Below are positions 1,018 through 56,830 of a stretch of 64,000 nucleotides of DNA, one piece after another. This DNA comes from Macrostomum lignano (Eukaryota), in contig NIVC01003629.1 of the NCBI GenBank assembly GCA_002269645.1, positions 1-64,000 of the forward strand, written 5' to 3'. The position numbers and the translations under genes were made by a program. Under the pieces are notes generated by a model, which worked only from the letters and a program-made list of their open reading frames with translations, did not search any database and was not told the DNA's origin. Numbering within the stretch: position 1 is the stretch's first letter; every line of letters begins with the position of its first letter.

Positions 1018-4000
1018 CTTCGCCAACTGCCCGTGTATCAGGCGGGTGTGCCCGTACTGCCTGTTGGCCCAGCGGCTCTCGGCGGCGCAGGCGGCGGTCA
1101 GCCTCCCGGCATGTCGATGCTTCGTCACGTCAGTTCGACGCCAAAGTCTGGAGAAACCAGCGTTAGCGACAATCGACCTCTCGGTGAGTTGCAGCGTTAA
1201 CATTCAAGACGAGTATGGAGTACTCGTGAGTAGTATAGAGTAATCGTAAGTAGTATAGAGTCTCGTGAGTAGTATTGTGGTATATGCGCATATAAAGTAT
1301 ATTTCATTTCACACACATTGGCCATAGACACTGCCCCTGTTAACCCTGCGTTCTAAAGCTAATATAAGGAGAGCAAATATAAAGGAAATGAATGTTAACA
1401 TCGGCATGGCAAGAGCCCGCTACCAAGCTTGAGATTACTAACACATAATTCACCTGGACTTCGAGTTGGTAACGGAAGTCGGATGTAACATTGGCGACGA
1501 GGATTCTTCAGAAGAAGACAAAATGACCGCGCCAAATACTGCTTCGAAAATCAGCAATTTGATCCGGCACGACCTGAAAGGTGGACTGGTATACGAGGAG
1601 CGTCTGGAACAATACTTCATCGCTAAATCCATCACCAAAGAGGAGATTAAGCGAGCCGAGCTCATCACAGTAATTGGTGAAGACTGCTATACGTTGCTCA
1701 GACTTACTGTCTCCAGACTCTCCGAAGGACAAATCCTACGATGATTTAATTGAAAAGTTACGAACGCATTTCACCCCAACGCCGAAAAGAATCGTCGAGA
1801 GATACAACTTTCATCACCGAAGCCAGCAGGAAGGCGAATCCATTGCAGAGTACGTCGCGCAGCTACGGAAGTTGGCGGCGACCTGTTCGTTGGAGGCTTT
1901 TTGTCGGAGGCGATATCAGAGACAGACTGGTTTGTGGACTACGAAGCAAGCTGACACAGCAAAGGCTGCTGCAGGAGGACGATGTTTCACTGACGACGCA
2001 GTTAAAATCTCGACAGCAATCGAAATCGCAGAGAAGGGTGCAATGCGGATCCACACTGGAAGAGACATTGTCGGCCTGGCTCAGGCCAATGCGGTATATG
2101 GAAGATCATCTGCTAAGGGATCGGGACCGACGAATCCGGCCAGTTCAGACGACCGGTGCTACAGGTGCCTCTCTTCTGGGCACTGGGCGAGAAGCTGTCA
2201 AAAGATCGCATGTCTGCAGTCGATGCAATAAACCAGGTCATGTTGAGAAGGCGTGCAGGACGAAGCAGAAGCAGTTCAGGGAAAACCAACCGTCGCACAG
2301 CAAGAAGAAGTTCAAACCCAAGCAGAGCTACAAAGGTAGGAAAATAAAGCATCTGAGCGCAAATGTTCATACTGACGCGTCATGCTATGGTGTCGGCGCG
2401 GTGCTTTCACTCATTATGAGCGATTCGGATGAGAAGCCGATCTGTTATGCGTCAGAGGCCTGTCCAAGGCTGAGAAGAACTATTCGCAGATAGAAAAGGA
2501 AGGTTTAGCAATAGTCTTCGCGGTGAAAAAGTTCCACCAGTATTTGTACGGCAGACGGTTTATTCTGGTCACTGACCATAAACCGCTTGTGACGATATTC
2601 GGTCCGAAGAACAACATTCCAAGCATAGCTGCCAGTCGGTTGCAGCGCTGGGCTGTGATTCTGTCAGCCTATCAGTTCGAGATTCGATACAGGCGGACAG
2701 ACGAATATGGAAATGCGGACGCGTTGTCAAGACTGCCGCTGGAGAGTACTAAGTCCACGGAGGATGGTGTGTTCCAGAATCGCATAGAGGCTCAACCAAT
2801 CGACCATGGAGAGTTAAAGAGAGCAACAGCGATGGACGAAAATCTGTCCCGTGTTCTGCGATACTGTCGTTTTGGGTGGCCAGAACATAGCGAACAAGAG
2901 CTTCAGCCCTACCACTCGAGGCGAAACGAGCTGAGTGTTGAAGATGGAGTCATCTTTTGGGGCATCAGGATGTTGATCCCTGCTTCACTGAAGCAGCAGC
3001 TACTGCAACTGCTACACGAAGGGCACCCCGGCATTGTGGGCATGAAGTCCCTGGCACGGCTGCATGTATGGTATCCAGGGATCGATAAAGACATCGAGAC
3101 GGCTCTAACAAATGCAAGGGCTGTCAAGCGCAGAGGAACCTGCCGCCACAGGCGCCACTGCAGCCGCTGCTCTGGCCAGAAAAGGCATGGACTCGACTTC
3201 ACTTGGACTTCTTTGGTCCATGCTACGGGTTCATGTGGCTTGTCGTTGTCGATGCCACAACCAAATGGGTTGAAATTTACCCGATGAGGTCGGCGACTGC
3301 CCATGGCACGATCAGCAAGCTGCAGGAAACTTTCGCGAGATATGGTTATCCGAGGCAAATCCTCTCTGACAATGGGTCGCAGTTCACTGCTGAGGAATTT
3401 AAAAACTACCTTCGAAGCTGCCGCATCACACAAATTCTGACGTCGGTGGGCATCCAAGATCGAATGGACTAGCCGAACGAATGGTTCAGACCGCCAAAAG
3501 AGCGTTAAGAGCGGGCATGAAGGACTCTCATGATGCACTAGGATGCCTAAATGCTTTTCTAGCGCGCTACCGAGTTACGCCACACTCTACAACCGGCAAG
3601 ACGCCTAGCGAGATGATGCTAAAGTACTCGCCAAGAACTAAACTTAGTCATCTTCACCAGGACACCGAGCAAAGAGTTGCTGAGAAGCAGGAGCAGCAGA
3701 AGCAGCAACACGACAAGGGAGCTTCAAAAGTAGCCCGTGAGTTTGAACCTGGAGAATCTGTGCTCGTGCTCGACTTCAGGAAGCAAGGAGAGGACAAATG
3801 GGCCGTCGGAGAAATTCTTAAACGCCGTGCACAACTCTCATGTCTGGTGAAAGTAGGCCGCATGGTCTGGAAACGGCACGTGGACCACATTACTTCGACA
3901 GGACTTCAAACGGAGAGCAAGGCCGCTTTGTCCATGAATTACTGGAGCAGCTAATCGGGAAAGGCAATAACGAGTCGCAGGCAGTTAACTCAGGCGGAGG

Positions 4001-13036: not shown

Positions 13037-45320
<32,284 letters not shown>

Positions 45321-48860: not shown

Positions 48861-51800
48861 TTAAGCAACAGAATCTAAAGCATCCTTAAAGACTTGCTCG
48901 ACAGTCGCTACTTCAACACCGTCGACTTCGTTAATAACACCGGAAATTCTAGACTCGTCAAGAACAATAACCAAACAGTCGTTAGTAACAGTCTTAATAT
49001 CGCCCCGACCAAAAGATTCGGCAGAAACTGCGCCCCCAGCCAGGCAGAATCGAATCAGCTGATCAGTAGTCAACAACAATCCGGGACTGTTAAATCCGTC
49101 AATTAATATTCGAACTCTCCTATTGGCTAGAATTCGGCAGCTTGTATTCGATTCTGTATTGACATTAAAATACAATTCGTGCAAACTATCGAACGGACCG
49201 CTAGGCTTGTCAGCAGCAGCAGCAGCAGTAGATTTATCAGGAGCGGAACGTTCGTAATGAACAACATAAACTGGCAGAGATTGACGCGCGTCGAAGGTCA
49301 CGAGTTCGCGTCCGTCGGGGCTACGATGCGAATGATAGCCTGGTTGGCAGGGCTGGCCATGGGAGTAGTGCCGGCACTGGTAGGTGCGACCCGGGCTGAC
49401 CTGTGCGGAGTGAAGGGAGCTTAGTTTATGGCTAAACTACCAGATAATTACATGTATTGTTAGTAAGGCTATTATTCCAGGTGATTATACTCAACTAATG
49501 CCGAAGCTAATCACCCAATTGCATCAACTAATCATCTAATGGCGTCAACTAATTACCTAATGGCGACACCTAACCACCTAATTGCGTCAACTAATCACCT
49601 AATGGCGACACCTAACCACCTAATGGCGTCAACTAATTACCTAATGGCGACACCTAACCACCTAATGGCGTCAACTAATCACCTAATGGCGACACCTAAC
49701 CACCTAATGGCGTCAACTAATTACCTAATGGCGACACCTAACCACCTAATGGCGTCAACTAATCACCTAATGGCGACACCTAACCACCTAATGGCGTCAA
49801 CTAATCACCTAATGGCGACACCTAACCACCTAATGGCGTCAACTAATCACCTAATGGCGACACCTAACCACCTAATGGCGTCAACTAATCACCTAATGGC
49901 GACACCTAACCACCTAATTGCGTCAACTAATCACCTAATGGCGACACCTAACCACCTAATTGCGTCAACTAATCACCTAATGGCGACACCTAACCACCTA
50001 ATGGCGTCAACTAATCACCTAATGGCGACACCTAACCACCTAATGGCGTCAACTAATCACCTAATGGCGACACCTAACCACCTAATGGCGTCAACTAATC
50101 ACCTAATGGCGACACCTAACCACCTAATTGCGTCAACTAATCACCTAATGGCGACACCTAACCACCTAATTGCGTCAACTAATCACCTAATGGCGACACC
50201 TAACCACCTAATGGCGTCAACTAATCACCTAATGGCGACACCTAACCACCTAATGGCGTCAACTAATCACCTAATGGCGACACCTAACCACCTAATGGCG
50301 TCAACTAATCATCTAATAGCGCCAACTAATCACTTATTTCAGATACGAGCTTGTATATTTAACTGCTTCTTTATTTTAGTGTTGTCACTCAATAAAGATA
50401 GCAAGCAAGCAAGAATAAGGCACTACTAACCAGACACAGCAGTAGTTTGCTCCGGCCTTTCACATAGTCCATAGCGCAAGCCGGGTACTCGCTAAAGTAC
50501 ACGCCCCGGCCGTACCAGCCGGAATCGTTGGTCTGTCGGTATTCGGTGCTGTAATCATTAGGATTATGAAATCCCTGCCGACAGATGGACTCGATATTGG
50601 ATTCGTCTGTGCCGTGGAATGCCAGCACAGTTTTCTGGCTGTCTTTGTCATTGCCAGAGTCGTCTTTGTTTAATAGGTCTTGTTGAAATTGACGAAATCC
50701 GGTTAGAAGTTCGGGATTGATGATGTACTCAACTCTGGCTACCTGGAAGCTGAGGTGAGGGGAGGTTTCAAGTTTTAAACTACGATCGCTTTACATATGT
50801 GGAATGAAGGGGAGAGGGAGTAAGGAAAAAGCCAGAGAAGGCAAGAGAGTAATAGAAAGAGGGCTAGAGAGGGAGAGAACAAGAGCGACAGTCAGGTGGG
50901 AGTCAGAGAGAGAGCCAGGGAGTAAGAGGGAGAGAGTCAGGGAGAGAGTCAGAGAGGGAGAGAGTCAGAGGGAGAGAGCGCCAGGGAGTAAGAGGGAGAG
51001 AATCAGAGGGAGAGTCAGAGAGGGAGAGAGTCAGAGGGAGAGTCAGAGGGAGAGTCAGAGGGAGAGTCAGAGAGGGAGAGAATCAGAGGGAGAGTCAGAG
51101 AGGGAGAGAGTCAGAGTGAGAGTCAGAGGGAGAGTCAGAGAGGGAGAGAGTCAGAGTGAGAGTCAGAGGGAGAGTCAGAGAGGGAGAGAATCAGAGGGAG
51201 AGTCAGAGAGGGAGAGAGTCAGAGAGGGAGAGAGCAAGAGCGACGTCAGAGAGAGAGCCAGAGAGGGAGAGTCAGAGGGAGAGAGTCAGAGAGGGAGAGA
51301 GCAAGAGCGACGTCAGAGAGAGCGCCAGGGAGTAAGAGGAAGAGAATCAGAGGGAGAGTCAGAGAGGGAGAGAATCAGAGGGAGAGTCAGAGAGGGAGAG
51401 AATCAGAGGGAGAGTCAGAGAGGGAGAGAATCAGAGGGAGAGTCAGAGAGGGAGAGTCAGAGAGAGGGAGAGTCAGAGAGAGGGAGAGAGTCAGAGAGAG
51501 GGAGAGAGTCAGAGAGAGGGAGAGAGTCAGAGAGGGAGAGATTCAGAGGGAGAGTCAGAGATGGAGAGAGTCAAAGGGAGATTAAGCGAGGGAGAATCAG
51601 AGGTGGAGTCAGAGAGAGGCAGTCAGAAAGGGGAATAGAGGTTAAAGAAGAGTTTGAGAACGCCATCAAAACCAGAAGAATCGGTACAAGCGGACAAAGA
51701 CGAGACATTAATTTCATCAACAAGCTTAAGCAGAAAAATCAGTGAGCAGTGAGACAGAATTCCGGCATCAATCAAGGCCGCTAACCATCCAACGCAGTCC

Positions 51801-53084
51801 CTGGCTAACAGCCGATGAAACTGCGACTCAGCCAGTCGATAATGAGACTCCTCCGGTGAGCCGCAATTCCATCGAGTCGAGTCGGATGAATCAAGCGACA
51901 CGGTCAGGTATCGATGGTCTTGAATGGCTTCCAGCTCTCCAGGCAGGACGGGCAGCCCGACGCAGCCAACGCTTGATAAGCGACGCTCTCGAGATTCGGC
52001 TCGGGCTAAGCGAAGCTCGAGGCTTCGACGAGCGGCCAGGGCCTCGGCTACCAGGGCTTTGCGCTCGGCGTGAGACATGGCGCTGTACTGGCGCATGAGC
52101 GACAGGCCGCGGGACAGAGCGTGCGGTTGCTGGGATGACATTTTGAGGAGTTTTTGTTGAGATGTTTCAGTCATGTGATGCTTTACATGTATTCATGCGA
52201 TGCTTCGGTCATGTGATGTTTCGGTCATGTGATGTTTCGGTTATGTGATGTTTCGGTTATGTGATGTTTCGGCCATGTGATGCTTCGGTTATGTGAAGTT
52301 TTGATCATGTGATGTTTCGGTCATGTGATGCTTCGGTTATGTGATGCTTCGGTCATGTGATGTTTTAGTCAGGTGATATTTCGGTCATGTGATGTTTTAG
52401 TCAGGTGATATTTCGGTCATGTGATGTTTCAGTCAGGTGATATTTCGGTCATGTGATGTTTTAGTCATGTGATGCTTTGGTCATGTGATGTTTAGGTCTT
52501 GTGGTGTAAGCGCCCCGAACATAATTTTATTAGCTTTACATACTGTTAAACGTATTTCGTTATATTTCAACTGTTAGTAGAGAACTAGGTTATGGTGTAA
52601 TGTCCCGGTATTTTTCGATAAGAAATTTGCACACGAAGTATTAAAGACCTCCTGGCTAATCATCTATTTTCATGTGCGATTAGTAACTTAAATGAGCAAA
52701 AAAACTACTAATGGTAGCAAGGTTCAAACTAAATACCTTTTCATTGTCCGGTCCAGAAGAAGGCAAACCTACTGAGTTATCCAACTTTTGCCGTTTAGAT
52801 TCAGAAATCCCATTCTCATTAACTGGCAGGGTGTCTTGTCTCTGCAATGATGGTTTCTTTCCAGCATCTCCCGCTTCGTCATCTTGGCTAGTAGCTTCTT
52901 CATCACTGTTGCCATGGTGATAGGCATCGCTACTAGTAGCTTCCATTTGCACCTGACTATTGTTTAAATCTTTGTCTTCATCGGGATGAATGAAATCTGC
53001 AAAGTGCAGCAGCCCGGTTTCCGGGCAATCGGCTCCGTGGGGACACAGCGGTCGCTGCCGCTCTGGTGCTGACGAACTTGATGA
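48861..53084 (-). CDS. PBZ zinc finger + PARP-family ADP-ribosyltransferase catalytic domain + BRCT-like domain protein
   Basis: Phase-0 exons 52737-53084 ([24 protein letters not shown] = Cx5Cx6Hx5H), 51794-52129 (donor approximate; [16 protein letters not shown]), 50431-50742 ([47 protein letters not shown]) and 48861-49400 ([30 protein letters not shown], then a BRCT-like segment). No ATG upstream of the PBZ within the first exon. Confidence 0.85.
49505..50335 (+). repeat. 42-bp minisatellite, a dimer of two related 21-mers (atggcgtcaactaatcaccta + atggcgacacctaaccaccta)
   Basis: About 19 units in an intron of the PARP gene. Confidence 0.98.
50805..51640 (+). repeat. GA-rich repeat (gagagtcagag(a)gg)
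   Basis: Tandem purine-rich units in an intron of the PARP gene. Confidence 0.95.
52165..52500 (+). repeat. 16-bp minisatellite (ggtcatgtgatgtttc)
   Basis: About 20 units. Confidence 0.93.
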
Positions 53085-53204
53085 CTGAAATTTTTAATTA
53101 AGAGCAAGTCTGTAATTTCTGTTGGGAGCAATGCTTTTTTTTATAGCTAAAACTTGGCGTCTGAATGTGCTTTATAGGAACTAGGACAGTTTTAGGCTGG
53201 TGCT

Positions 53205-54005
53205 GGGTGACCCAGCGATTGAGGATCTGAGAGACCTAGCAATTGAGGATCTGGGAGGCCTCGCAATTGAGGATCTGGGAGGCCTCGCAATTGAGGATCT
53301 GGGAGGCCTCGCAATTGAGGATCTGGGAGGCCTAGCAATTGAGGATCTGGGAGGCCTCGCAATTGAGGATCTGGGAGGCCTCGCAATTGAGGATCTGGGA
53401 GGCCTCGCAATTGAGGATCTGGGAGGCCTCGCAATTGAGGATCTGGGAGGCCTCGCAATTGAGGATCTGGGAGGCCTCGCAATTGAGGATCTGGGAGGCC
53501 TCGCAATTGAGGATCTGGGAGGCCTCGCAATTGAGGATCTGGGAGGCCTCGCAATTGAGGATCTGAGAGGCCTAGCAATTGAGGATCTGTGATACCCAGC
53601 ATTTGAGGATCTGTAATACCCAGCAACTGAGAATCTAGGAGGCGGGCCCAGCAACGGAGGATCTGGGAGACTGTCCCAGAATTCAGAAACTAACCCTCTG
53701 GGAGGCTGGCCCAGCAAACTGACACTCTGGGAGGCTGTCCCAGCTACTGACACTCTGGGGAGGCTGCCCCAGCAACTAACACTCTGGGAGGCTGGCCCAG
53801 AAACTGACACTCTGGGAAGCTGGCCCAGAAACTGACACTCTGGGAGGCTGTCACAGCAACTGACACTCTGAGAGGCTGTCACAGCAACTGACACTCTGGG
53901 AGGCTGGCCCAGCAACTGAGGATCTGGGAGGCTGGCCCAGCAACTGAGGATCTGGGAGGCTGACTTAGCAACTGAGGATCTGGGAGGCTGGCCCAGCAAC
54001 TGAGG
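53205..54005 (-). repeat. Compound 24-bp and about 28-bp minisatellite with the CCTCCCAGATCC core on the minus strand
   Basis: gcaattgaggatctgggaggcctc units, then gcaactga(ggat/cact)ctgggaggctggccca units; the latter are the reverse complement of the 314-625 array. Confidence 0.96.
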
Positions 54006-54174: not shown

Positions 54175-54462
54175 TTAAGAGTTGCTCTGCCCCTGATCCA
54201 GCTTGGACTCGTAGCCAGTCTGGCTCTTGGCCTTGGCCCGGCATTCCTCTTCAACCTTCTTGGCAATCATTCGATCGAAAGCGCGCTGCACATCGCGCGC
54301 ACTCGACTGGGAAGCAACGGCGCCAGCTCGTTTTGGCGCCTTGTCGACTCGACCTTTGCGAGTTTTCTCGCGTTCGCTGGTCTTTTTACCTGTCGGAGTT
54401 TGGCGGCGCCTCGCCTCCTGAGCGGGCAGCTTGGCCTTCACTTTGATCTTGCCTTGAGGCAT
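54175..54462 (-). CDS. C19orf53: Leydig cell tumor 10 kDa protein homolog (UPF0390 family), single exon, 95 aa
   Basis: MPQGKIKVKAKLP...RKGRVDKAPKRA...MIAKKVEEECRAKA, a basic small protein matching the family pattern MxQG..K / KG.r.iAPK / i.kk.E....kA from recall. Confidence 0.8.
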   Translation of the reverse strand: MPQGKIKVKAKLPAQEARRRQTPTGKKTSEREKTRKGRVDKAPKRAGAVASQSSARDVQRAFDRMIAKKVEEECRAKAKSQTGYESKLDQGQSNS

Positions 54463-54879
54463 GAATGTTGTGTTGTTGACTAAGTTAAAAGCCTAACATT
54501 TTTACTGCTTGTAAAGATTTAAACTATATTTGCCAACATTTTTACTACAAGTAGAGTAGTTGTAAAAGTTATTCATCATTAAATGTCTACCTTCAAAATG
54601 GTTTTGTTTTTACGGTAAGTATAGCTTAATGAAAGTGATAGATATAATAATTAGAATTGTAGCTTGACTTATTTTTAATTGTGCAGTTGTCTTTTTATTT
54701 GAAATTCTCTTGCAGTCAAGACTAGTGAAACTTACACATAATAACTACTTGATCACAAAGCTTAGTCCATAAGTCACACAAAGTTGGGTACTTATACTAT
54801 TGAGTAGCAAGCAAGAATAATAGGAAAGAAAGCTTGAATGCTTTTCAACATTGATTGGCATATCAACCAACATCGAACA

Positions 54880-56830
54880 GAGTCATCTCAGGCCCGAGCC
54901 TTAAGCGATGCTGCAAGAGCTTGACGTCATTCGAGACGGCATCAAAGACTGCAGGAACGCTCCAAACATCAGCGAGGCGGAGGCGAAGGCCCTGCGGGAC
55001 CTACGGGCGGACAAGCCCATCCTCATCAAGCCGGCCGACAAGGGCAGCCAGCTGGTCATTCTCAAGCGGGCAAGACTATGTTCTTCAGTGCCTGCGTCAG
55101 CTGGAGGACCCGCTGTTCTATCGGCCCATGAACGCGCCGATCAACTGCTTCACAGCTCAGATGATCCGCACCGGTTTCAAGTCGCAGCTGGAATTATTGA
55201 TCATCGCCAGTATAATGCATTTAGCCCGAAGAGCGAGTTCCGCATGCGGTACTTTACTTCCTGCCGAAGATCCCCACAAGCCTGTCGAGTCTTGGCCGCT
55301 CGGCGACATTCCTCCGGGTCGGCCCATTGTGTCTGCCGTGGACAGCGAGACCTATGCCAGCGGCCGATTCATCGACAGCTTCCTGCAGCCGATCGTCATC
55401 AAGCTGCCCAGCTTCATCAGGGATACGGACCACTTCCAGGCCGCCATCCACGGGATCACCTGTCCGGCGTCCGAGGAGGCCTTCCTGTTCACCATGGACG
55501 TGTCAGCCTATACACCAACATCCCGACGAAGGCCGGTCTCGAGTGCGCGCGGAGGGCTTTTAGGGAGCGCCCGGACAGCCGATGCCAACCTGCTCAAGCT
55601 GACCCTGGAGCGCAACGACTTAGAGTTCGACGGAAGGTTACATGGGCTACTGGGAGCCAGACCACAGAAGCCGTCTGTGGCTCCGCTACATTGACGACGT
55701 CTTTGAAGAGTAACGGGGAACAGAGGCGGAGCTGGTTCGGTTTCACCAACATCTGGACACCTTCGACCCAAACATTCGGCTACAAGTACAATTAAGCTAC
55801 AGCTGCACCGAAGTCAACTTCCTGGACGCCACCGTCTTCTGGGACGGCGAGGGCGACAACAAGAGCCTGGGAACCTTGGTGTTCTTCAAGCCCAACGACA
55901 GCCGAGCCCTCAACATCTGTGTTGAGCTGTCCTCCCCCTTGTCGTCTTATGCTGAGTAGCGGCTACTCACTACTCCTGAATAGCTACCGGCATCGTCTGG
56001 AGGCCGTGATCCAGGACAGTTGTCCGGACTGCGGGTCCTCCCCGCATGATTCTAGACATCTGTTTCAATGCCCAGCCAATCCGACCATCCTGGAAGTGGC
56101 CGACCTCTGGCGGCATTTGGTGGAGGACACTAACTTTCTCCGCCTCAGCGACTCAATTTTCTGACCTGAACTGAGCAATGGTTACACACATACGAGTACA
56201 CACAGGTGAGCCCCTCATCCACCGCGACTTGTTCCATCCTAAGCAGACTTTCCGGGGCGTGGTGAAGTCCCAGGCTCCTCAGGTACACCTGGCGGTGCTC
56301 CCGGATGGCCGAATTCGACGCAGCGTCCACCAGGCTGATATTAAATTTGGTGCAGCACCAAGACTACAGCTGGTATTTCTTCCGCACCATCAAATACATG
56401 TTGACTGAACTAGGCTTCTACCTGACCAGAAGGTGGGAGTTTGGCTTCCTGCTGTGCAACCTGGCCCAGCACATGCCAGGTTCAGCTCCATCTGCCCCAG
56501 ATCAGCTGCCATATTGGTCCAACTCATCATCAGTTAGAGGATCGACTGCAACGAAATGAATTCCATCTACGCCATGTTCTCCCACTGGTGAAATCACATG
56601 GTCTATGTTGGCAGGACTGACCAACAGCATCTTTGGACGCATGCTGGTGCACATTGGCGACATCTGACATGCCCAAAACACTGCAGTAGCCCGCCACTTT
56701 ACTAGTGATAGCCTCAGGCTGACAGGTTTCACTGTCACCAGCATGTAGGCTTGGGATAGCTTAGGACAAGAAGCTAATGAACAGCATTAGAACCATGAAG
56801 TCAAGCTGATCAATGCCCTGCATGGCACCA
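54880..56830 (+). mobile_element. Degenerate Penelope-like retroelement (RT + GIY-YIG endonuclease), frameshifted and interrupted
   Basis: Across frames: NISEAEAKALRDL, ILIKPADKGSQLVIL, PPGRPIVSA, PSFIRDTDHF, FLFTMDVS.LYTNIP, LKLTLERNDLEFDG, WLRYIDDVF, EVNFLD, LVFFKPND; after the interruption HRDLFHPKQTFRGVVKSQ, then VYVGRT...RMLVHIGDI...TAVARHF (GIY-YIG remnant). Confidence 0.85.
55915..56165 (+). mobile_element. 3' fragment of a non-LTR (LINE) retrotransposon nested in the Penelope-like element
   Basis: SGYSLLLNSYRHRL...CPDCGSSPHDSRHLFQCPANPT...DLWRH is the C-terminal CCHC domain pattern of LINE ORF2 proteins; it splits the PLE thumb region. Confidence 0.7.

Follow-up and report, generated by a model that had tools for sequence, protein, structure and literature searches.

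A flatworm member of an uncharacterised PARP clade with a PBZ-type zinc finger, an H-Y-E catalytic domain and a diverged C-terminal tail

PARP biology rests almost wholly on 17 human enzymes. Among these, PARP1, PARP2 and PARP3 (clade 1) carry WGR and a helical regulatory domain, tankyrase-1 and tankyrase-2 have the H-Y-E catalytic triad and no helical regulatory domain ahead of the ADP-ribosyltransferase (ART) domain, and PARP12, ZAP and PARP10 are mono-ADP-ribosyltransferases of clade 3. A PBZ finger together with a PARP catalytic domain was already noted in Entamoeba, Capsaspora and lancelet (Perina et al. 2014). In this study, a gene was analysed on the minus strand of a 64,000-nucleotide stretch of DNA from the free-living flatworm Macrostomum lignano (contig NIVC01003629.1, positions 1 to 64,000; hereafter the window), where positions 48861-53084 are the exact coding limits of the gene. 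An initial annotation of this stretch had described an ADP-ribosyltransferase with a PBZ finger, a helical segment, an H-Y-E catalytic fold and a BRCT-like tail, and all of the sequence elements that it listed were found where it had placed them, on the minus strand.

The analyses described below make it likely that the gene is intact and expressed in M. lignano, that it is a fast-evolving member of an old PARP clade which has not been characterised, that its start codon is donated by a spliced leader, and that recruitment of its product no longer depends on the canonical reading of poly(ADP-ribose) (PAR). The gene does not represent a novel type of system but falls within the PARP superfamily as a hitherto undescribed variant, of which the window copy is a derived member.

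The clade of orthologues

The family search gave 31 hits, and the clear relatives of the flatworm protein had E-values from 5e-61 to 4e-33. These relatives were found in molluscs (Argopecten, Patella, Crassostrea, Pinctada, Batillaria, Nucella, Littorina, Solemya and Dreissena), in the annelid Capitella, in rotifers (Rotaria) and in cnidarians (Actinia, Acropora and Oculina), and a profile search added Branchiostoma belcheri and many protist and metagenome sequences. Pfam analysis of the oyster, limpet and rotifer proteins gave the order of two PBZ fingers (E-values of 1e-25 to 1e-27), PARP catalytic domain and BRCT domain, all of which were significant, and the lancelet protein (B. belcheri) has two PBZ fingers, a coiled coil and an ART domain. 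The cnidarian members end just past the ART domain, without a C-terminal domain, whereas the flatworm protein has a tail. One of the protist relatives is arranged as WWE-ART-BRCT-PBZ and another as WWE-ART.

Crassostrea virginica A0A8B8BUY0, Patella vulgata LOC126831981, Rotaria and Branchiostoma belcheri Bbelb_069130 are orthologous to the flatworm protein across both the coiled coil and the ART domain, with 28-39% identity. The mollusc, annelid, rotifer and lancelet proteins share with it the signature HFRLAESQFYRL, the motifs SYPVLAFHGT and KELVIF, and the H-Y-E triad, and their second PBZ finger and BRCT domain take the positions that its finger and C-terminal domain take. In these proteins, two canonical PBZ fingers (CxYGxxCYRKN) are combined with a BRCT domain that is significant by Pfam, whereas the flatworm protein has one finger with H, P and E at the contact positions, no BRCT signal and a much longer branch. 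The cnidarians Actinia tenebrosa (LOC116302161), Acropora digitifera (LOC107358070) and Oculina patagonica were the most similar to the flatworm protein by identity (35-39%), and they also have the same variant of the finger.

A neighbour-joining (NJ) tree built on the catalytic regions united the animal members, M. lignano included, with 98% bootstrap support, and the M. lignano branch measured 0.32 against approximately 0.1-0.17 for the others. An assignment of M. lignano to a "cnidarian-type" subfamily without BRCT was considered and rejected, since the tree, which as an NJ tree with long branches is weak evidence, sets M. lignano outside all other animal members.

We conclude that these proteins form a conserved, uncharacterised clade, the usual layout of which is two PBZ fingers, a coiled coil, an H-Y-E ART domain and a BRCT domain most like that of PARP1. 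The initial annotation had proposed an invertebrate subfamily with little or no description. This was borne out in that no characterised member was found, but the clade also includes protists, and its lancelet member comes from an invertebrate chordate. The clade is not described in Citarelli et al. 2010, and our literature searches found no characterised orthologue or clade member and no mention of the gene id Mlig020716. The proteins themselves have public database entries that carry automatic domain labels.

The ancestor of the clade would have carried one or more PBZ fingers, a coiled coil, an H-Y-E ART domain lacking the helical regulatory domain, and a PARP1-type BRCT domain. Orthologues with two canonical PBZ fingers are probably brought to the PAR made by PARP1 and PARP2 at DNA damage, and the BRCT domain probably docks the enzyme on partners or on DNA. 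The clade enzyme might thus amplify or edit the PARP1 signal at sites of damage, with WWE replacing PBZ as the PAR reader in protists. The best argument for a PAR-recruited writer is that two unrelated PAR readers, PBZ and WWE, have repeatedly been fused to the same ART clade. The "reader-writer" role of the initial annotation is, in this respect, plausible for the clade, but it is doubtful for the M. lignano gene. The clade spans cnidarians, spiralians and lancelet and is absent from the usual model animals, and in it PAR-binding fingers and a PARP1-like BRCT domain are joined directly to an H-Y-E ART domain that has no autoinhibitory helical domain. If active, these enzymes would provide a natural case in which a second ADP-ribosyl writer is recruited in a PAR-dependent manner.

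The catalytic domain

The Pfam family PF00644 scored 47.1 bits on exon 3 alone and 44.6 bits on the whole flatworm protein, against a cut-off of 26.7. Exon 3 (50431..50749, minus strand, as are all parts of the gene given below; PF00644 E-value of 2.6e-12) encodes the core of the ART domain. It includes the triad His (H276 of FHGT, 50614-50616), the triad Tyr (Y315 of GVYF, 50497-50499) and the second nicotinamide-stacking Tyr (Y326 of AMDY, 50464-50466). The end of the ART domain is encoded by the 5' part of exon 4 (49248..49400), with E369 of GRELVTF at 49305-49307. In a family alignment of 27 sequences, H276 and Y315 were invariant and E369 was at least 90% conserved, and all of the 41 invariant columns of the family were kept in M. 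lignano, including H, Y and the GxGxYFSE motif. The profile of the catalytic region of the family aligned E369 to the Ile of the PARP12 H-Y-I, which is the third triad position. The H-Y-E triad reported in the initial annotation is thus present, with H276 and E369 as its first and third residues, but its Tyr lies in GRGVYF (Y315) and not in CAMDY (Y326).

Catalysis is probably retained in M. lignano because all of the invariant columns are kept, and the sequence points to an enzyme that would carry out NAD+-dependent ADP-ribosylation of itself or of nearby proteins. Poly and mono activity cannot be told apart from the sequence. The H-Y-E triad alone does not predict chain elongation, as PARP3 and PARP4 are H-Y-E mono-transferases. 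One caveat attaches to the active site. The Tyr of CAMDY (Y326) is presumably equivalent to PARP1 Y907, and we take the position three residues ahead of it to be that of the nicotinamide-anchoring Ser (S904) of PARP1. This position is occupied by Ala323 in M. lignano, which has C-A-M-D-Y against Y-S-M-x-Y in the family and Y-S-H-H-Y in PARP12, and the substitution could lower NAD+ binding. A few other family members also have Ala or Cys at the position of the Ser anchor.

An AlphaFold2 (AF2) run was carried out on the identical public protein with the family alignment. In the resulting model, the ART core had predicted local distance difference test (pLDDT) values of 75-95 and the finger was followed by an acidic disordered linker. 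The "helical segment" of the initial annotation was recovered as a 35-residue helix ahead of the ART core (residues 134-168 of the identical public protein; pLDDT of approximately 81-86). In a Foldseek comparison with the PDB, the catalytic domains of tankyrase-1 and tankyrase-2 came first (E-value of approximately 1e-11, template modelling (TM) score of approximately 0.7), with PARP12 and PARP10 close behind; 364 PDB matches had E-values of 0.001 or below, and all 50 of the 50 matches listed were PARP catalytic domains. When the family profile was compared with solved structures, PARP12 (2.8e-12) and ZAP (2.5e-11) were followed by tankyrase-2 and PARP10 (both 5e-10), and the weaker matches were, in order, PARP4, PARP14, PARP15 and then PARP1 (approximately 1e-4). 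Pfam analysis found no WGR, helical regulatory, ankyrin, SAM, macro or WWE domain in the flatworm protein.

The tankyrases, although the best structural match and similar to the flatworm protein in their H-Y-E triad and in lacking the helical regulatory domain, are only approximately 20% identical to it. Furthermore, the flatworm protein has neither ankyrin nor SAM domains and has a longer donor loop with a conserved motif of its own. PARP12, ZAP and PARP10 are the best profile matches, and WWE is common to PARP12 and to some of the protist clade members; unlike the clade, which has Glu at the third triad position, they have Ile, Val or Leu there (Citarelli 2010), and they have no PBZ finger and no BRCT domain. 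Both domains that distinguish PARP1, PARP2 and PARP3 are missing from the flatworm protein, and PARP1 was matched at only approximately 1e-4. Orthology to tankyrase or to PARP12 was therefore considered and rejected, on the E-values and the missing domains. These results agree with the earlier claim that no human PARP has this domain order, as the architecture matches none of the human enzymes and the best profile E-values were only 3e-12 (PARP12) and 5e-10 (tankyrase-2 and PARP10), compared with 1e-33 to 5e-61 inside the family. They also indicate that the protein is not an orthologue of a characterised PARP, given the weak E-values to human PARPs and the fact that literature searches returned no paper on such an orthologue.

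The zinc finger and the C-terminal tail

The nearest accessory modules in described proteins are the PBZ fingers of APLF and the BRCT domain of PARP1; the flatworm finger is without the APLF contacts, and the flatworm tail is not scored by the BRCT profile. The finger is encoded at 52986..53045, with C14, C20, H27 and H33 as its zinc ligands. The motif C-x5-C-x6-H-x5-H occurred once in the six frames of the 64-kb window, against a chance expectation of approximately 0.04; for a stricter PBZ pattern, the chance expectation was 0.0. Besides the zinc ligands, the finger keeps the framework residues G, F and HP. Its top match among all PDB sequences was the tandem PBZ of APLF (E=2.6e-5). It aligned with both PBZ1 and PBZ2 of APLF, and the aligned APLF stretch is RTSCMYGANCYRKNPVHFQHFSHP, in which MYG and CYR stand against PHG and CPE in the flatworm. 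In the family alignment, the flatworm finger is placed in the columns that hold the second PBZ finger of the orthologues, which argues that it is PBZ-type by descent. The Pfam PBZ profile gave a less favourable result, since PF10283 scored 15.5 bits on the finger (E=0.017), under its cut-off of 22.7, and was not reported in the Pfam scan of the whole flatworm protein; the orthologues scored 88-94 bits.

In APLF, Y381 and Y386 contact the adenine and R387 contacts the phosphate of ADP-ribose (PMC6264785). In the alignment of the flatworm finger to APLF, these positions are H16, P21 and E22. The claim of a PBZ finger is upheld by the CCHH ligands, the framework and the top match to APLF, with a sub-threshold profile score and replaced contact residues. 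The further proposal that the enzyme is recruited to existing PAR becomes doubtful for the M. lignano gene, because H, P and E stand in place of Tyr, Tyr and Arg. Judged from these residues, canonical PAR reading in M. lignano has probably been lost or changed.

The cnidarian orthologues have a very similar variant finger, C-x-x-G-x-[DN]-C-x-E-T-x-L-[IL]-HFA[DE]F-x-HP, which is likewise without the Tyr/Tyr/Arg residues. The flatworm finger is nearer to this variant (C-x-E-T-x-L-[IL]-HFA[DE]F) than to the canonical PBZ of molluscs, although the tree does not group the flatworm with the cnidarians. Canonical fingers, as in oyster, and variant fingers, as in flatworm and coral, offer a ready comparison for the roles of individual PBZ residues. 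RNA interference is available in M. lignano. Transgenesis is available in this species as well (PMC5730564).

It can tentatively be proposed that the clade is a separate ancient PARP lineage, reaching from cnidarians to lancelet and including the protists with WWE, that its H-Y-E enzyme is primed by existing PAR, that it was lost in vertebrates, insects and nematodes, and that the C-x-E-T finger is a selected variant with another ligand. If this were true, the enzyme would act on the PARP1 signal in a feed-forward manner, as its amplifier or editor.

The C-terminal tail (48864..49133) is an alpha/beta segment at the position of the BRCT domain of the orthologues and ends in KDALDSVA. In the oyster, limpet and rotifer orthologues and in one protist orthologue, PF00533 or PF16589 was found directly after the ART domain. 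PF00533 matched the C-terminal BRCT domains of the orthologues with E-values of 3e-8 to 1e-13, and the family tail profile matched the BRCT domain of PARP1 best (6e-13), followed by REV1, TopBP1 and BRCA1. The length and the position of the flatworm tail fit a BRCT domain. In the full-length AF2 model, the tail (pLDDT of 65-80) was arranged as b1 (RVRIL)-a1-GG-b2-b3 (CLVIV)-a2-b4 (EVAT)-a3, which is the BRCT order, in a run in which the other rows of the alignment were real BRCT domains.

The flatworm tail is the least secure part of the finding, and methods applied to the tail itself gave no such signal. Pfam reported no BRCT or other match in the flatworm tail at an E-value of 1 or below, hhalign gave a probability of 0.07 for the flatworm tail against the BRCT tails of the orthologues, and a hidden Markov model of the orthologue tails did not report the real flatworm tail up to an E-value of 100,000, at which approximately 1,500 of 2,000 shuffled versions were reported. 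A phmmer search of 1.84 billion representative proteins matched the flatworm tail to M. lignano only. In addition, an AlphaFold model of the tail alone had a pLDDT of 48, and Foldseek found nothing significant for it, with the BRCA1 BRCT domain at rank 12 (E-value of 8). The BRCT-like tail of the initial annotation is therefore suggested by its pattern, its position, the medium-confidence topology of the full-length model and the PF00533 matches of the orthologues, but not by any sequence method applied to the flatworm tail, and we regard a diverged BRCT domain as the somewhat more probable identity of this segment.

With its finger lacking the Tyr/Tyr/Arg residues and its tail diverged beyond recognition, the M. 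lignano enzyme would probably be recruited independently of canonical PAR reading. The alternative that the flatworm protein is a working reader-writer, with a finger that binds PAR, a functional BRCT tail and extension of PAR at lesions, could draw on the retained zinc ligands and G and HF..F.HP framework with APLF as the best solved match, on the intact triad and on the BRCT-like order of elements in the full-length model. The conservation of the C-x-E-T finger in several cnidarian orthologues also suggests selection over random decay. However, this alternative is unlikely in view of the replacement of the APLF contact residues, the low Pfam score of the finger and the tail, which has no BRCT signal by sequence and only a low-confidence, unmatched model on its own; nor does an H-Y-E triad by itself predict that chains are extended.

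Gene structure, the second copy and the start of translation

The gene has four exons with canonical AG/GT borders, which join into one open frame (three-frame translation) of 516 codons plus the stop codon, from the exon-1 acceptor at 53084 to the stop codon at 48861-48863. Exon 1 (52737..53084; acceptor tttcag/TCA, phase 0; donor AAG/gtattt) encodes the finger and, at its 3' end, GPDNEK, and its boundaries are identical in a second copy of the gene. The conserved LSRG..YS.MS..ER and GE.EA motifs, the long helix (51968-52072) and the first part of the ART domain, which bears the family signature, are all encoded in exon 2 (51786..52129; acceptor cccag/CAA; donor TG/gttagc, phase 2). Another exon-2 donor, DEIN/gtctcg (phase 0), was rejected because it adds 25 residues that are absent from every orthologue, and both the public model and the alignment indicate TG/gttagc. 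Exon 4 (48861..49400) encodes the end of the ART domain, the C-terminal tail and the stop codon.

The spliced model is identical, residue for residue, to GenBank PAA50468.1 from residue 3 of that protein on; the record is entered for Macrostomum lignano as "hypothetical protein BOX15_Mlig020716g4, partial". The first residue of UniProt A0A1I8JK75 is encoded by the first codon after the exon-1 acceptor, and this isoform uses an internal donor by which 29 residues of the acidic linker are skipped. The M. lignano genome annotation behind the public gene models is RNA-seq-based (PMC5730564). Splicing of the PBZ exon to those of the catalytic domain, as the initial annotation assumed, is supported by their joining in both PAA50468.1 and A0A1I8JK75 and by orthologues that have PBZ and ART in one protein. 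Neither a second upstream PBZ exon nor an upstream exon with an ATG was found within the 64-kb window, where the upstream spacer consists of tandem repeat.

The second genomic copy lies on NIVC01001665.1 (3968-8756) and matches the window gene in its four exons, its splice sites and its upstream neighbour. The two copies differ at 22 of 1551 coding positions (10 synonymous and 12 non-synonymous), which corresponds to a ratio of non-synonymous to synonymous differences per site (pN/pS) of approximately 0.37. The differences include G17E, which replaces the conserved Gly of the finger, and a change from GG to EG in the helix-strand turn of the tail, both in the NIVC01001665.1 paralogue. An intact second copy of matching structure argues for a duplicated, intact gene and not for a chance run of motifs. 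The introns are 607, 1036 and 1030 bp long in the window gene and 1506, 788 and 944 bp long in the other copy.

Each intron of the window gene, as well as the upstream spacer, is packed with a long tandem array of its own (49507-50333, 50868-51618, 52193-52507 and 53218-54003). The repeat units of these arrays are a 42-mer (20 copies), 12-, 14- and 28-mers (approximately 50 copies), a 16-mer (20 copies), a 24-mer (16.5 copies) and a 28-mer (13 copies).

No in-frame ATG precedes the finger in either genomic copy, and a stop codon at 53094-53096, just upstream of the acceptor, closes the frame. The acceptor tttcag/TCA at 53084 is in phase 0 in both copies, and no donor lies upstream of it. The spliced leader of M. 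lignano is 35 nt long with the 3' end ...TTGCATG (PMC8629364), and its joining to a phase-0 acceptor would place the ATG of the leader in frame. In flatworms, the terminal AUG of the leader has been described as the initiator Met (Cheng 2006, as cited in PMC12582326). It is therefore likely, from the sequence and this precedent, that the start codon is donated by the spliced leader at 53084; in the mature mRNA, the leader would probably be joined at the exon-1 acceptor with its terminal AUG as the start codon. For trans-spliced genes, the Mlig_3_7 annotation took the 5' ends from leader-trimmed reads (PMC5730564), which accounts for models that start at the acceptor and are flagged "partial". 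A start codon supplied by the leader probably explains "partial" deposits of M. lignano genes such as PAA50468.1. No gene for the spliced leader RNA was found within the 64-kb window.

The start codon could alternatively be M47 (MEATSSD...), which lies after the finger and is used by the public model A0A1I8I9Y9. In that case, the finger codons would be a relic in the 5' untranslated region and the product would consist of the ART domain and the tail. Such a start would agree with the missing upstream ATG and with G17E in the paralogue. However, it is improbable, since in both copies no stop interrupts the frame between the acceptor and the end of the finger and the phase-0 acceptor matches a leader that ends in ATG, with a precedent for initiation at the leader AUG in flatworms. 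Moreover, the finger has retained its CCHH ligands and framework since the flatworm lineage parted from molluscs and cnidarians, which requires selection on a translated product and would be left unexplained by a start at M47.

A further difficulty for the reading of an intact gene with a leader-donated start is that many near-invariant positions of the family are altered in M. lignano, and these changes, together with G17E in the paralogue, leave some room, as far as the sequence goes, for functional decay of the gene. That the gene is a pseudoenzyme or an incipient pseudogene in a recently duplicated genome, with its accessory functions and perhaps catalysis lost, is nevertheless very unlikely, because the long branch, the altered positions (Ala323 in place of Ser among them), the degenerate finger and tail, and a pN/pS of 0.37 that is based on only 22 differences are opposed by the intact frame and splice sites of two copies, the retention of 41 of 41 invariant family columns, and gene models in GenBank and UniProt that come from an annotation built on RNA-seq.

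The neighbour upstream of the PARP gene, which is kept beside the second copy, encodes a DUF2462 protein of 95 aa on the minus strand (54175..54462; Pfam PF09495, 1.7e-6). The spacer that separates this gene from the exon-1 acceptor is 1090 bp long, of which 786 bp (53218..54003) consist of 24-mers and 28-mers in tandem, so that the repeat-adjusted spacer is approximately 300 bp. Operons in M. lignano have been defined by a repeat-adjusted distance of less than 1 kb (PMC8629364), and with 786 bp of the spacer being repetitive the two genes fall within this limit. The DUF2462 and PARP genes may thus be an operon-like pair that is resolved by trans-splicing.

The DNA of the window is eukaryotic, with introns rich in tandem repeats. 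Elsewhere in the window, remnants of a long terminal repeat retrotransposon with broken frames were found on the plus strand at 1674-3287, including gag with a zinc knuckle, a reverse transcriptase RNase H-like domain and an integrase zinc-binding domain. Two long open reading frames that overlap in different frames (54855-55795, plus strand) had no Pfam match and resemble a frame-shifted mobile-element gene. Downstream of the PARP gene, coding-looking open reading frames on the minus strand (38885-41195 and 45054-45320) gave one weak EF-hand match (E-value of 0.005).

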